DNA of 64,000 nucleotides from Octopus sinensis (lineage: Eukaryota), in the NCBI RefSeq assembly GCF_006345805.1, contig NC_043000.1, positions 103,602,001-103,666,000 of the forward strand, in the 5' to 3' direction. Within the stretch, counting starts at the first letter, position 1, and the number at the start of each line of letters is the position of its first letter. Both the position numbers and the translations under genes were made by a program. The notes beneath the pieces are model-generated. The model was not told the origin of the DNA. It made no database searches and was given only the letters and a program-made list of their open reading frames with translations. Of the stretch, positions 165 through 20,097 are shown piece after piece.

Positions 165-1985
165 ACAAAGGCGGCGATATGGTCGCAACGTTGGCGTGTC
201 GGACAAAATGCCTATCGGCATTTCTTCCGGCTCTCTATATGCTAAGTTCAGATCATGCCGAAGTTATCCTTTCATCACTTTCATCATTTCGGGGTCGATA
301 AAATATAGTACCAGTTTAAATACCAAGGTCGATATAATCGACTAACCATCTCCTAAAACTGCAGGCCTTATGTGAGAATTTGAAGCAATATTTGATAGAA
401 TACACTATTTTATTTATACTAATTTTGCTACCAGAAAGTTTTCATTACCATTAAAATTGCTATCTTTTATTCTTGAATTTAAAAAATGTTATTTTATCAG
501 AAAGGAACAAAATCTTATTTCTATTATTTAAAGCAACAATGTTAGAAACCTACTCTTAATGTTTTATAGCATTTAGTCTCGCCTTAATCCTGTCCGATTA
601 ATTTGTCTTCATCTGTATGAGAGTGAATGAAGAGACTGTTCGATACATAGATTGGAGTGATTAGTCTCTGATAAATGCAGATTAATAAGTTGTCAGTTTA
701 TCAGTAACCGCCTGATTGATCATAACGGATTATTAATGTTGCGATTCAAGGAGGCGGACAGGCAAAACCATTAGAGTCGGAAAAAAGCGCCTTGCGCTCT
801 TTGTTCTAGCTCTTTACATCTTGTGTTTAAGTCCCATTGAGGTCAACTGTAGATTTCAATCTTTTGGTATTGATAAAATAAAGTACCGATCTAGTATTGG
901 AGTTGGTGGTAATACCACTGTGGTATTGACTAACGCTCCCGTCAAAGTTGCTAGTTTTGTGCCTAAATCAGAAATTATTATTGACGTTGCATTATCTGTG
1001 TAACTATAATACAACAAACCGTAAATAAATACGTAAGCACAAGCTCTCTGTTTCAATTTTAAAGCACAAGGAAACGTTTGAATATTAAGCTAATGGTTTG
1101 TTAATATATTGTATAGAATAGGGAGGCAAACTGGCAAAATCATTTTCGCGCCGGAAAAAGTTTAGCAACATTTTTTCCAATGTTACGTTCTAAGTTCAAA
1201 TGTCGCCGAGGTCGATTTTGCTTTGCAACATTTCGGGGTCCATAAGATAAGAACCAGTAGAACGCTGGTATCGATGTAATAGACCTAATCCTTTCCCACA
1301 AATTTCTGACCTTGTGCCAAAATTTAAAATCAATATGTCGTGTTGAATACTAGAATATTGTTAATTTGAAACTGAAAAGAAAAAGCTTAGTTCTGAGATC
1401 AAATGCCGCCGAGGTCGGTTTTGCCTTTCATCCTTTCTGGATCGATAAAATAAGTACCAATTGCATACTAAGGTCGATGTAGTTGACTAGGCCCCATCCC
1501 CCGAAATTGCTAGCTTCATACAAAAATCTAAAATCATTATTTAATCTAAATCCTGATGGCGAACTTGCAGAATCGCTAGCACGTTAGTTGTAGTTCCTCA
1601 TTCTAATGTTCTGAGTTCAAATTCCACAGAGGTCGACTTTGCTTTTCATCCTTTGGAGGTCGATAAAATGCATAACATTTGCGTACTTGAGTCCATATAA
1701 TCAACTAGGCCCCTCCCCATAAATTTCAGGATTTGTGCCTATAGTAGAAAGAATTAGTAAATCAAAGTGCAAGGCGGCAAGCTGGTTGAGTCGTTACCGC
1801 ATCGGACAAAATGCCTAGTGGCAATTCTTCTTCCTTTACGTTCTAAGTTCAAATCTCGCTGAGGTCGACTTTGTCTTTTACCTTTTCGGGGTCGATGAAT
1901 AAGTGCCAGTTTTACACACAAGGGTTGATGTAAGTGACTCATCCTTTTTGCCAAATTTTAGGTTTTGTGTGTCTATAGCAGAGAT
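165..1985 (+). mobile_element. Cluster of six degenerate tRNA-derived SINEs (type A: aaggcggcgagctggc...gaggtcgactttgcctttcatcc)
   Basis: Copies at ~165-390, 835-975, 1123-1335, 1385-1535, 1552-1750 and 1770-1985. Confidence 0.85.
584..612 (-). CDS. Candidate terminal coding exon, (N)EDKLIGQD*
   Basis: Acceptor cattcactctcatacag, phase-1 frame reaches TAA at 586-584, minus-strand AATAAA at 466-471. Other endings, or continuation beyond the window, are possible. Confidence 0.3.
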
Positions 1986-2573
1986 AATTATTCAATCTAA
2001 GTGCATTGAAAACATCAACTAATAAAGAGATTGCAACATAGTCTCTTTAACACCACAATGTTCAACACTATCTACATGAAGCAAACAGTTTCGAACTACA
2101 TATATGAAAACAAATAATTATGTCTTCACACTACACATATCATTTTTTTAACTACAACAACATCGTTGATTGCAACTACTTTGTGATGTAAAACACTAAT
2201 TAACGTTTCGCAGCAAAACTAAACTTGATTAGTTTGGTAAGATTCAGAACACTCAAAAATATCATACAGTATACGTTCAGCTGAAGCTCTGCCCTACAAA
2301 TCACACAATTATATGTAACTATATTATATTGTAAATCATATTTCTTGACCATAGAAAAAAGTAAACATTTCACCAGCTCCACATTCCAATTGTTTTTTGA
2401 CACCAATCCACTCAAACACCCACACTCTCACAGCAGGAGTAGGAAGGATGTTGAGTAAAAGAAAAGAAGAATTGTAGAAAGACTTATTTAAGCAAACTCA
2501 TCATTATACACAAAGATTTTGTAAATCAAAAAATCATACTTCCTCCCAAATGTAAAATGTAATATAAACTTAC

Positions 2574-2594
2574 TGTTTTCATCGGAATCTAATT
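2574..2594 (-). CDS. 21-nt symmetric phase-1 micro-exon, (E)LDSDEN
   Basis: Acceptor ttttttttttcgtgttttcag, donor A|gtaagt; last 12 nt identical to those of the 10345-10383 exon. Confidence 0.7.
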
Positions 2595-2964
2595 CTGAAA
2601 ACACGAAAAAAAAAAAGCAAAAATATATTTTTTAAATATTTATTATTCAGAAGAATTCATACGGATATCCATGGCAGTCTAACGTACATGGTAATCTTTA
2701 TAAACAGCATTTATTTCCAGACTTATATGCGTGTTTTCTAAGCTTCTGGTTTTAACTACATTCACTCTGCCTTAGGTAGCGTAGATGTGTCTGTGTCTCA
2801 ACATATGTGACGAAGACTGATGTTCAATATTGGTTTCATAAGAGGCCAGGTTTGTATATGATGAAAATATACTACTGAATACTGTGTCAAGCTATTATTT
2901 CGGATCACACAATCTAGTGTAAAACTAGAAATGACTAAATACCGAAAATAGTGTTATAGGAACA

Positions 2965-17429: not shown

Positions 17430-18050
17430 TCGCGATATCAATCAGCGTACAAGTATTTACGATCCACTTCTTGACTATTACGTCTGGACGCTTTGCCTTG
17501 AACCTCTTATCAGGTCATATATTGTTTTTCACGTATGTTTATACCACTTTTTATCCAATTTCATGTCGAAGAGTTGGTATAGTACTCCAGCATGTCTTAA
17601 ATCCGGAAATGATGTTGTCAACCATCTCATTCTACTTGTTGCATAGTCTGCGTTTGATGCTGTCATCATTCCCAATTTCATTTCAGTAGTTATTTTTGGC
17701 AACGTTATTTTTGATTTTGTGTAGACGCTTCTGTTTCTACATTAATCCAGAGCTTTCGAACCATTGCTGGCTTCCGTTCAGGCTTGTTTCTTCTCCATCG
17801 GGTCCTGTGGGATATTGGCCATAGAATATTTTCTTCTTTCCATTTTACTTTAGCAGATTCTAGAATTTCATTTTCACTTTGTCTTTTCTTTCTTATTCAT
17901 TTTACTGTCGTTATTTTGTAGTAGCTGTCTATGTTTTTGTCAGTCACTGCCCTCATTGTGTATGAGGTAGATGTATTCTATCTATACCAGATTTGAGGTG
18001 CTAACTTCTGAAAGCTATAAATATTTTCGTGGGGTGGGGTTTATCCAAAC
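17430..18050 (-). mobile_element. Old R4/Dong-type LINE fragment
   Basis: HLKSGIDRIHLP and KRPDVIVKK...CTLIDIAIP remnants among many stops. Confidence 0.7.
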
Positions 18051-19602
18051 TCCTCAATTCACTTAAATTCTCTATCTTTATATCCTTGAGGAGAGGTATT
18101 GTCTTGACGAAAAGGGATTTTTGTTGCTCCTGATACGGTTGTCTTCGATGTCCTGGAATTGATATTATCATCTATGTCATAGACGATAGTGTAAGTAACT
18201 TTTCGTTACTAGTTTTGCTGTCTGTATGTGGGATGTGTGAGGTTTTATTTTTTCATGATTGCATTTTCAGAATCATATTGCTTTCTTGTTTTCTTTTGTG
18301 TAGGATTAACCGATAGGAAAGGGAAGTGTAAAACCCTCTCAAACTAGTTACTTGGAGCAACGGCACTAAGTCATTCAGACAGGATAGGTTATTCATGAGG
18401 CCCGTAATAACTAAATAGGGTATAACGAACATGTTTAATGAGGATAAATACAACGTGAGATGGAAATGAACTGGTAAGCGACATTTTATTCTCCGTTATA
18501 AAATACAATAACTGCCATACATGAAATAAAATTACATAACACAAATGTGTGAGAGAACTTCGTAGTTAGGACGGACTGTCGATGTCGTAGACACATTTGA
18601 CGTACTGTTTATGGTGTGTAGAGGCAGGTGTTTGGTCTGTGGTCTTCATGCAGCAATGATGTAGACAGGCGTCTGGTGGAGATGATGAGAGCGGAGAGTG
18701 ACTGGTGTAAAGACATCGTTGCTAGAGACGAGATGCGTGTGTGGTTAGTGGCGAGTGCCAAAGACCTAAAGCAGTCGAAACTTGTCCTTCTCATTGGGAA
18801 TAGTGGGCTCCCAGAAGCTGGTGAAAGTTTTTCCGCTAAGAGAACTCGTGATCTATTTTAGCGCATCTGATTAGTTGACCGTGTAAATAGGCGCAATTGT
18901 TTAGGGGACAATTTTCGCCTAAAAACTAACTAATCAGGACAGTGGTTACAACCTGGTCTTTATAGCTAAGTGTTCTCTGCTACGTCCAAACAATAACTAT
19001 AAATCAAAGGGTGAGAGAATAATTTGCTTTCTTTTACTTTGTCCATCCGTTCTGCTAAAAGGGTAATCAAAAATATAGAACTGGTATTTCAGATAAGTAA
19101 AGTACCAGTTCTGTATTAAGGTCGATTGTCTGTTTTTTTCTGCCTTTCTCAAGCTGTTCCTCTCTCTGTCAAGAAGAAATGGGTTATGATCAAACTTGAA
19201 AAGGAACGGGATGCTGAAGACACGCCTTATATTAAGGTTGCACCTCCACTATTCTATCAGGCATAGGGGGCCTAAAACAAATGCGATTGCAGGAATTTCT
19301 ACTTCAAGTCACACTAATAGCAGAACTTCAAATAGTTACTTCAAGTTAACCAAACAATAGTCTATGATACAGAACTATCATTGTTTAAAACAGTGAGCTA
19401 TGCCATATATGATACCTGGTTACAGGTATATGAAGCAAATCAGGTGAGAGTTAAGTGCCCTCTATTGTAGCTTTGCACAGCATTGCTAACAGATATATGA
19501 TTCGCAGAAACTTTCATCGGTCTTATACGCAATTGAAACTACCAGTGGCAGGTGTTTTGGAATAAATATAGGTTGGAAAATAACAAAATATAATCAACGT
19601 AC

Positions 19603-19663
19603 CTTGTTGAGACCAGGTAATTCCAGCAATCAGAATAACTTGGAAAAGTATCAGCAAATGCAT
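19603..19663 (-). CDS. First coding exon of a predicted secreted micro-exon gene; signal peptide MHLLILFQVILIAGITWSQQ, phase-1 donor (exon with 5' UTR part spans 19603-19688)
   Basis: Minus strand: acceptor tcttgtctttactttcccacag, ATG at 19663, 20 codons of hydrophobic signal-peptide character plus 1 nt, donor AAG|gtacgt. Confidence 0.7.
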
Positions 19664-20097
19664 ATCGTTGTGATTAATAAGAATTAAACTGTGGGAAAGT
19701 AAAGACAAGAATGCAACAGAAGTGATTGGAAAATATCAGACTACTTAGTTTTTATTCAGAATGGTGGGGACTTCTATTGGCTGAAACAACTCGAGATTTT
19801 CCTATACTAATTCCTATTCAGTTTCAACAGGGAATAGTGTGTGTGTGTGTGTGTGTGTGTGTTGTGTGTGTGTGTGTGTGTGGTGTGTGTGTGTGTGTGT
19901 GTGTGTGTGTGTGTGTGTGTGTGTGTGTGTGGTGTATTTTATAAAGTTTAGGATAAATACAGTGTCATTTTGATTAAGTACTGCAGAGCAAATGAGGGCA
20001 ACTTTTGCAAATTAATCTTAATTCAGGATGAAATATGGATTATAAATGGTCTAAGATTGAAGTGAAAATGTGCGACAAGTATAGAAATTATTTGTAG

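Follow-up and report, generated by a model that had tools for sequence, protein, structure and literature searches.

Three very short segments on the minus strand of a 64,000-nt stretch of Octopus sinensis DNA (contig NC_043000.1, positions 103,602,001 to 103,666,000; the whole stretch is the window, and positions are counted from its first letter) are found at corresponding positions in three diverged copies of one 200-380 nt block. The segments lie at 17024-17062, 10345-10383 and 2574-2594 and are referred to as copies A, B and C, or together as the trio. Conservation between the copies peaks at the splice-like motifs that border the segments, and the trio shares a single open reading frame. 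We tentatively read these segments, with a probability of roughly 0.4, as symmetric micro-exons that are genuine, or were so until recently, and that tandem exon duplication produced in a small, unannotated gene for a secreted peptide. The trio formed part of a longer chain that had been proposed from the sequence (the original prediction), in which a signal-peptide exon and six micro-exons were taken as a gene resembling the micro-exon genes (MEGs) of schistosomes. The paralogy of the trio had not been reported there. Our analysis confirmed the observation of the chain in part, and the interpretation given to it is also partly supported.

Three paralogous candidate micro-exons

The relationship of the three copies was evident both from BLAST and from pairwise local alignment. 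For the segment around copy C, the two best non-self BLAST matches in the entire window were copies A and B, both placed identically relative to the exon. The pairwise alignment scores were 51-52 for A/C, 41 for A/B and 35 for B/C, compared with 12.6 ± 2.3 (maximum 24) for 300 real segments of the window and 16-18 ± 2 for local shuffles. Two co-linear BLAST matches connected 17206-17352 with 2749-2898 (E=4e-6) and 16973-17128 with 10291-10445 (E=2e-5). Counted from the exon, similarity extended from about -290 up to the exon itself for A/C, from -116 to +102 for A/B and from -143 to +66 for B/C; in copy B it ended ~140 nt upstream, beside a degenerate long terminal repeat (LTR) retroelement. 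A 17-mer (GATGAAAACAGTAAG plus 2 nt) was common to copies C and B. All three copies are located on the minus strand, at most 15 kb downstream of the proposed first exon. No fourth copy was detected with nhmmer models of 176 and 460 positions in 128 kb, corresponding to both strands of the window. A weak nhmmer match at 4950-5003 was dismissed as a further copy (E=1.1).

The copies are only 50-67% identical in pairwise comparison, and columns invariant in all three make up 39% of the upstream and 26% of the downstream flank; judged by this divergence, the block copies are old. The exon starts align exactly across the three copies. Upstream, the acceptor TGTTTTCAGA (10 nt) forms the longest run that is invariant in all three, the next one having 6 nt; downstream, it is the donor AGTAAG (6 nt). 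With the exon border marked by a slash, TGTTTTCAG/A and A/GTAAG are invariant in all three copies. After discounting AG and GTAAG, for which the original prediction had selected, we estimate the probability that the seven or eight extra invariant acceptor bases were kept by chance to be roughly 1e-3.

The exons of the trio measure 39, 39 and 21 nt, and the difference of 18 nt is a multiple of three and therefore in frame. Only phase 1 stays open throughout the trio, phase 2 being interrupted by a stop in each copy and phase 0 by a stop in copy C, and the 61-nt first exon leaves this same phase. The trio exons are purine-rich and have a GC content of 0.29-0.38 vs 0.21-0.26 in the 100 nt upstream. 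They encode 33 residues of polar and acidic character, four of which are hydrophobic. A coding role of the conserved upstream block was dropped, as it contains stops in all frames.

A plausible history would start from an ancestral unit consisting of a 39-nt symmetric (phase 1-1) micro-exon and ~100-300 nt of flanking intron, which would have been duplicated twice in tandem long ago. Later transposon insertions may have moved the three copies ~7 kb apart, while the splice signals would have been kept and the exon interior would have drifted and changed its length in frame.

The seven-exon chain compared with chance

When the sequence was re-read, all seven minus-strand segments of the proposed chain were present, with lengths of 61, 39, 39, 42, 39, 39 and 21 nt. 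Their borders agree with the description given before: AG precedes each internal exon, GTAAG or GTATG follows, and the first exon is followed by GTACG. The spliced translation of the seven segments reproduces the predicted peptide letter for letter, and the suggested ending NEDKLIGQD* exists as a phase-1 continuation at 612-584 on the minus strand. The introns would be 0.4-6.6 kb long in the seven-exon model and up to 7.7 kb in a reduced model.

The chain is not one object, however, and consists mostly of splice-like motifs that were joined by eye and are freely supplied by chance. Pseudo-exons were counted under loose criteria, namely AG followed by 18-60 nt that are a multiple of three and open in phase 1 and then by a GT[AG]AG-type donor, with block shuffles as the null. 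The plus strand contained 90 and the minus strand 106 of them, compared with 97.6 ± 14.6 in the shuffles. When splice sites were scored with generic metazoan position weight matrices (PWMs) and both acceptor and donor had to reach at least 4 bits, 19-28 symmetric open pseudo-exons were found in each strand/phase combination, including 25 for phase 1 of the minus strand. With the exact criteria of the original prediction, the interval 584-19688 held 18 minus-strand phase-1 matches with 14 distinct donors, whereas shuffles gave 9.4 ± 3.6; the nominal p value of ~0.03 is uncorrected for six strand/phase comparisons, for nested matches and acceptors and for the three non-independent paralogues. 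Six of the 14 available phase-1 donors had been selected for the chain. GTATG was in excess on the minus strand (38 vs 17), which this p value likewise leaves uncorrected; ACAT- and AC-type microsatellites probably contribute to the excess. The original prediction itself named equally strong open pseudo-exons of 3n length (a multiple of three nucleotides) on the plus strand or in shuffled sequence as evidence that would count against the chain. Such pseudo-exons proved to be about equally frequent in the other phases, on the plus strand (window-wide) and in shuffles, and by that preset criterion the whole chain is refuted as a statistical object.

The six proposed micro-exons differ strongly in quality (Table 1). 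The trio goes beyond chance, being paralogous together with its flanks, and copy C has the best splice sites by PWM score among all claimed exons. Poor splice sites and a lack of paralogy make it most likely that the exons at 9891-9932 and 8291-8329 are motifs due to chance; the latter is situated in microsatellite-rich DNA of 14-20% GC adjoining (TA)n at 8377-8415. For these two exons and the one at 3859-3897, BLAST and nhmmer revealed neither similarity to the repeated block nor any other paralogue in the window, and all three encode basic, hydrophobic peptides unlike the acidic trio. A resemblance of the basic exons to parathyroid hormone or corticotropin-releasing factor (CRF) was dropped, as it found no support in Pfam or the PDB.

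The first exon (19603-19663) contains a hydrophobic core, LLILFQVILIAGI, and a small-residue site, TWS/QQ, as judged by a heuristic check alone. Segments in which an ATG precedes a hydrophobic core and a good donor number ~3 in the window once microsatellites are set aside, and a shuffled window yields 2.4 ± 1.9 of them, so that this signal-peptide-like exon is statistically insignificant when taken by itself. No paralogue of it was found in the window. Inspection by eye of the region upstream revealed CCAAT at 19780-19776 and an AATAAAA motif at 19756-19750. At a distance of 170-520 nt, the first exon is preceded by two microsatellites, (GT)51 at 19837-19935 and (AGA)29 at 20096-20183; the CCAAT and AATAAAA motifs fall between them and the ATG.

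Downstream of 2574, only three phase-1 candidates for a terminal exon have an acceptor that reaches 6 bits, and the segment at 584-612 is one of them. Signals of the AATAAA/ATTAAA type are present 112 and 169 nt past its stop. The segment starts with ATGAAGACA (603-612), which differs by one mismatch from ATGAAAACA of copies C (2574-2583) and B (10345-10354). By eye, the two strings stand in the same reading frame (xAT GAA rAC A), while their flanks have no detectable similarity; the resemblance may be coincidental.

Table 1. Features of the candidate locus and of the rest of the window. Scores in bits refer to generic metazoan splice-site matrices.
Feature	Position	Strand	Details
Signal-peptide-like first exon, MHLLILFQVILIAGITWSQQ	19603..19663	-	ATG 19663-19661; donor AAG/GTACG, 9.1 bits, leaves phase 1
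Candidate micro-exon, copy A, EDPATQKTDSCNN	17024..17062	-	39 nt, phase 1-1; acceptor 5.3, donor 4.9 bits
Candidate micro-exon, copy B, KQNVSRNRETDEN	10345..10383	-	39 nt, phase 1-1; acceptor 8.9, donor 5.4 bits
Candidate micro-exon, copy C, ELDSDEN	2574..2594	-	21 nt, phase 1-1; acceptor 12.2, donor 6.3 bits
Copies of the duplicated block	A ~16973-17352, B ~10291-10526, C ~2547-2898	-	Local alignment, BLAST
Candidate micro-exon, KYRRLIRQLHFSR	3859..3897	-	Acceptor 6.8, donor 8.0 bits; no paralogy
Claimed micro-exon, probably spurious	9891..9932	-	Acceptor -3.9 bits (ttattgaaacag, without pyrimidine tract); no paralogy
Claimed micro-exon, probably spurious	8291..8329	-	Acceptor 0.2, donor 3.0 bits
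Candidate terminal coding segment, NEDKLIGQD	584..612	-	Stop TAA 586-584; acceptor 9.5 bits
Degenerate LTR-retrotransposon pol	11212..13820	-	Broken frames; Pfam rve 11212-11901, RT_RNaseH 12063-12539, RVT_1 12782-13476
SINE-like family sites	168-343, 1101-1950, 2956-3209, 22655-22880, 26211-26587, 41109-41738, 53247-53374, 54714-57976, 61286-61429
Fairly intact LINE	58307-61278	-	ORFs of 365, 318 (RVT_1) and 199 aa (zf-RVT)
Other LINE fragments	20896-21291 (+), 38188-40119 (+), 47466-48032 (-)		Fragment 38188-40119: one frame broken by single stops
Second LTR-type element	50662-52755	+	DUF7041 gag-like ORF, then RT_RNaseH_2/RT_RNaseH
LINE, long interspersed nuclear element; SINE, short interspersed nuclear element; ORF, open reading frame.

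Repeats and transposons in the window

The introns of the chain had been described as filled with transposons, which is correct: they contain microsatellites, SINE-like arrays, an inverted-repeat element and remnants of LTR retrotransposons. Around the retroelement at 11.2-13.8 kb, no LTR pair of at least 60 nt was found. A perfect 29-nt tandem repeat of 2.1 copies, TGGATGCCAAGCACCAAATCTGAAAATAA, is present at 14942-15001, just upstream of the retroelement remnants. The SINE-like family has units of ~100-200 nt with the core GTTCTGAGTTCAAAT.CCGCCGAGGTCGACTTTGCCTTTCATCC and occurs in both orientations, often in short tandem arrays, with 70-84% identity; it had no Rfam match at the gathering threshold. 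A 138-nt inverted repeat (6024-6161/7641-7778) is 81% complementary, with its arms 1.5 kb apart and flanking AC/AT/TG microsatellites. Related copies were found at 32186-32510, 53482-53705 and 22367-22493, and the element at 6024-7778 looks like a foldback element or a miniature inverted-repeat transposable element (MITE).

The domain scan of the window recognised no host gene, all its matches being to LINE or LTR elements. The reverse transcriptase of the fairly intact LINE (59189-60145) had its best match, with 82% identity, in a protein on a 1.7-kb metagenome contig of the Joint Genome Institute (sample 3300037598). It was 47-56% identical to many contigs of the European Nucleotide Archive and to two proteins of the cuttlefish Acanthosepion pharaonis, the only named relatives, for which identity was 47-54%. 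This agrees with the cephalopod-like origin that had been suggested for the DNA.

The candidate gene, its alternatives and known systems

In the simplest model of a gene built on the trio, the first exon (19663-19603) with its phase-1 donor would be joined to the three trio exons and these to the short last exon at 612-584; the exon at 3859-3897 may be an additional cassette. The product would have ~62 aa, and its mature part would be a small, very acidic and polar secreted peptide, QQEDPATQKTDSCNN-KQNVSRNRETDEN-ELDSDEN-NEDKLIGQD. Because each internal exon is a multiple of three and in phase 1-1, skipping one or another would leave the frame intact, which would be the sole MEG-like property of such a gene. 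The strong donor of the first exon and a plausible terminal exon with polyadenylation-type signals also speak for the model. The DNA itself displays the sequence features, the paralogy, the peak of conservation at the splice signals and the common frame; that the exons are transcribed, spliced and linked to the first one, and that the product is secreted or has any function, is our inference.

A number of observations weigh against this gene. The first exon and the trio are connected by strand, order and phase only, a match that we estimate to arise by chance with a probability of roughly 0.1-0.15. Pseudo-exons and signal-peptide-like ATG exons as good as these are about as frequent as chance predicts, the numbers are few and the exons were chosen by eye. 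The 5′ half of the exon is less conserved (8/19) than the flanks (71/108; p=0.03), which fits fast evolution of the peptide and equally fits absence of coding constraint. Furthermore, a second pseudo-exon of the block at 17222-17254 on the minus strand keeps AG and GT in copy C (~2754-2786; 33 vs 31 nt), and this internal control indicates that both dinucleotides can persist in a pair of copies by chance. The LTR retroelement in the claimed intron 2 lies in sense orientation to the claimed gene.

The searches for homologues also speak against it. Among 5.8 billion protein clusters, the 93-aa spliced peptide had one word-sharing candidate and none with E ≤ 1. This search was of low power, and its negative outcome is weak, as an ORF of a transposon in the window was not in the gene-call collection and no near-identical LINE copies were in the database. 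In Pfam, nothing was above threshold for the peptide, with sub-threshold matches of DUF1505 and T2SSC to the hydrophobic N-terminus, and no match was found in the PDB. Metagenome contigs were scanned for exact matches to two patterns, the 3′ end of the first exon and the acceptor...donor pattern of the trio; both scans were of low power and gave no match. The peptide strings were absent from the literature searched. The source species' own genome and transcriptome were probably outside the databases searched. Rfam at gathering thresholds had no match in the window, and the literature searched contained no meaningful link between micro-exon genes and cephalopods.

Much of this would be expected if the region were transposon-rich, AT-rich non-coding DNA with no gene at all. 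The trio would then stem from a local non-coding duplication of long ago, or from a repeat of low copy number, whose ancestor happened to carry TTTTCAG...GTAAG, and all three copies would have kept these motifs by chance. We consider this nearly as likely as the small gene. It would account for pseudo-exon counts that match chance whatever the strand or phase and that recur in shuffles, for a chain that took six of 14 available phase-1 donors, for the ease with which signal-peptide-like exons arise by chance, for the lack of any homologue, family or transcript trace in the searches, for an exon interior conserved no better than its flanks, for the half-retained second pseudo-exon in one paralogue and for a window with transposon domains alone. 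It explains less well why a 10-nt acceptor and a 6-nt donor were kept in all three copies at 39% invariance, which by the above estimate (~1e-3) is improbable. The in-frame change in length, the single shared open frame that matches the phase of the first exon, and the presence of just three copies in one orientation within 15 kb downstream of that exon also argue against a non-coding duplication. A low-copy duplication or unclassified repeat would resemble the block in its three diverged, AT-rich copies of 200-380 nt without protein-domain content, but differ from it in that no extra copy is present in the 128 kb of both strands, that the copies have a single orientation and that conservation peaks at splice-like motifs. 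Many copies in both orientations would be typical of a dispersed repeat, and within the window there are three copies only.

The conserved splice signals would support exon status equally if the trio belonged, or had belonged, to another transcript, as non-coding or differently started cassettes or as relics of a dead gene, with the first exon as an unrelated chance ORF. The statistically unremarkable first exon, the sense-oriented retroelement and the heavy transposon load of a possibly decaying locus are compatible with this. A non-coding transcript would, however, need neither the match in phase and the order relative to the first exon nor a frame that stays open throughout the trio, and an alternative first exon was not found; we regard this explanation as quite unlikely. 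Less probable still is the full gene of seven or eight exons, in which all six micro-exons would be used and skipped combinatorially to yield secreted variants. Every internal exon is indeed 3n and open in phase 1, the first exon is signal-peptide-like, the splice sites at 3859-3897 are good and there is the mild excess of minus-strand phase-1 pseudo-exons (18 vs 9.4 ± 3.6). This excess becomes insignificant when nested matches, paralogues and six comparisons are considered, and the exons at 9891 and 8291 combine poor acceptors or donors with a lack of paralogy and with basic, hydrophobic peptides that do not match the acidic trio. With pseudo-exons at chance level and no transcript or homologue found in the searches, the seven-exon MEG-like gene and its combinatorial skipping are thus unsupported.

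Descriptions of a MEG-type architecture are, to our knowledge, essentially confined to parasitic flatworms to date. On paper, the model follows the layout of schistosome MEGs, in which a 5′ exon with a signal peptide (putative here) and a 3′ exon enclose very short symmetric exons that hold most of the coding sequence, have lengths that are multiples of three, are separated by long introns and can be skipped in frame. However, the model was built by selecting for this layout, and pseudo-exons with these properties are as frequent as chance predicts. MEGs have 10-20 micro-exons of 6-81 bp, introns of 0.1-5 kb and secreted products (bioRxiv 10.1101/2023.06.21.545858); here at most six micro-exons were claimed, three or four are credible, and introns reach 6.6-7.7 kb. 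Moreover, MEGs are defined experimentally by transcripts and by skipped isoforms that give in-frame protein variants, both of which are predictions here. The better conservation of the splice-adjacent intron than of the exon interior recalls the rapid evolution reported for the products of MEGs (PMC4350168). Membership in the schistosome MEG family is unsupported, there being no similarity to a known protein, no Pfam family and a host that is cephalopod-like and not a flatworm. If the resemblance to MEGs is real, it would be convergent and would not indicate family membership.

Tandemly duplicated cassette exons are the better-supported comparison. Cassette or mutually exclusive exons of this kind are usually 50-300 nt long and reside inside conserved multi-domain genes in which their usage is documented. 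They share with the trio neighbouring copies with 3n-related lengths, the same phase, retained splice sites and similarity that extends into the flanking introns. In the trio, these features are seen as similar neighbours (scores of 35-52 vs a null maximum of 24), lengths that are multiples of three, a shared phase and splice sites in every copy. The differences are that the exons are 21-39 nt long here and belong to an unrecognised candidate gene.

A bolder proposal joins both comparisons: a convergent MEG-like cephalopod gene, in which a signal-peptide exon and 21-39 nt phase-1 cassettes, multiplied by tandem duplication, would have conserved splice signals and nearby intron but hypervariable interiors, and in which the choice of exons would generate a family of small acidic secreted peptides. 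We consider it unlikely in this form.

The case is a modest lead based on one independent signal, and a small unannotated gene for a secreted peptide is possible but unproven. If the locus is not transcribed, it is a useful caution, as by-eye chains of this kind are what chance yields: open AG...GT segments with lengths that are multiples of three behind a hydrophobic ATG segment in AT-rich and transposon-rich DNA. Weight is carried only by independent signals, here the paralogy and the conservation of the splice sites. Should the trio and the first exon prove to be spliced together, they would represent a micro-exon gene for a secreted peptide outside the flatworms that was made by duplicating a 39-nt symmetric exon. 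ORF finders, most gene predictors and standard annotation would all miss such a gene. It would mean that the MEG-type architecture can arise independently, and it would hint at a class of tiny, lineage-specific secreted peptides that are missing from cephalopod annotations.

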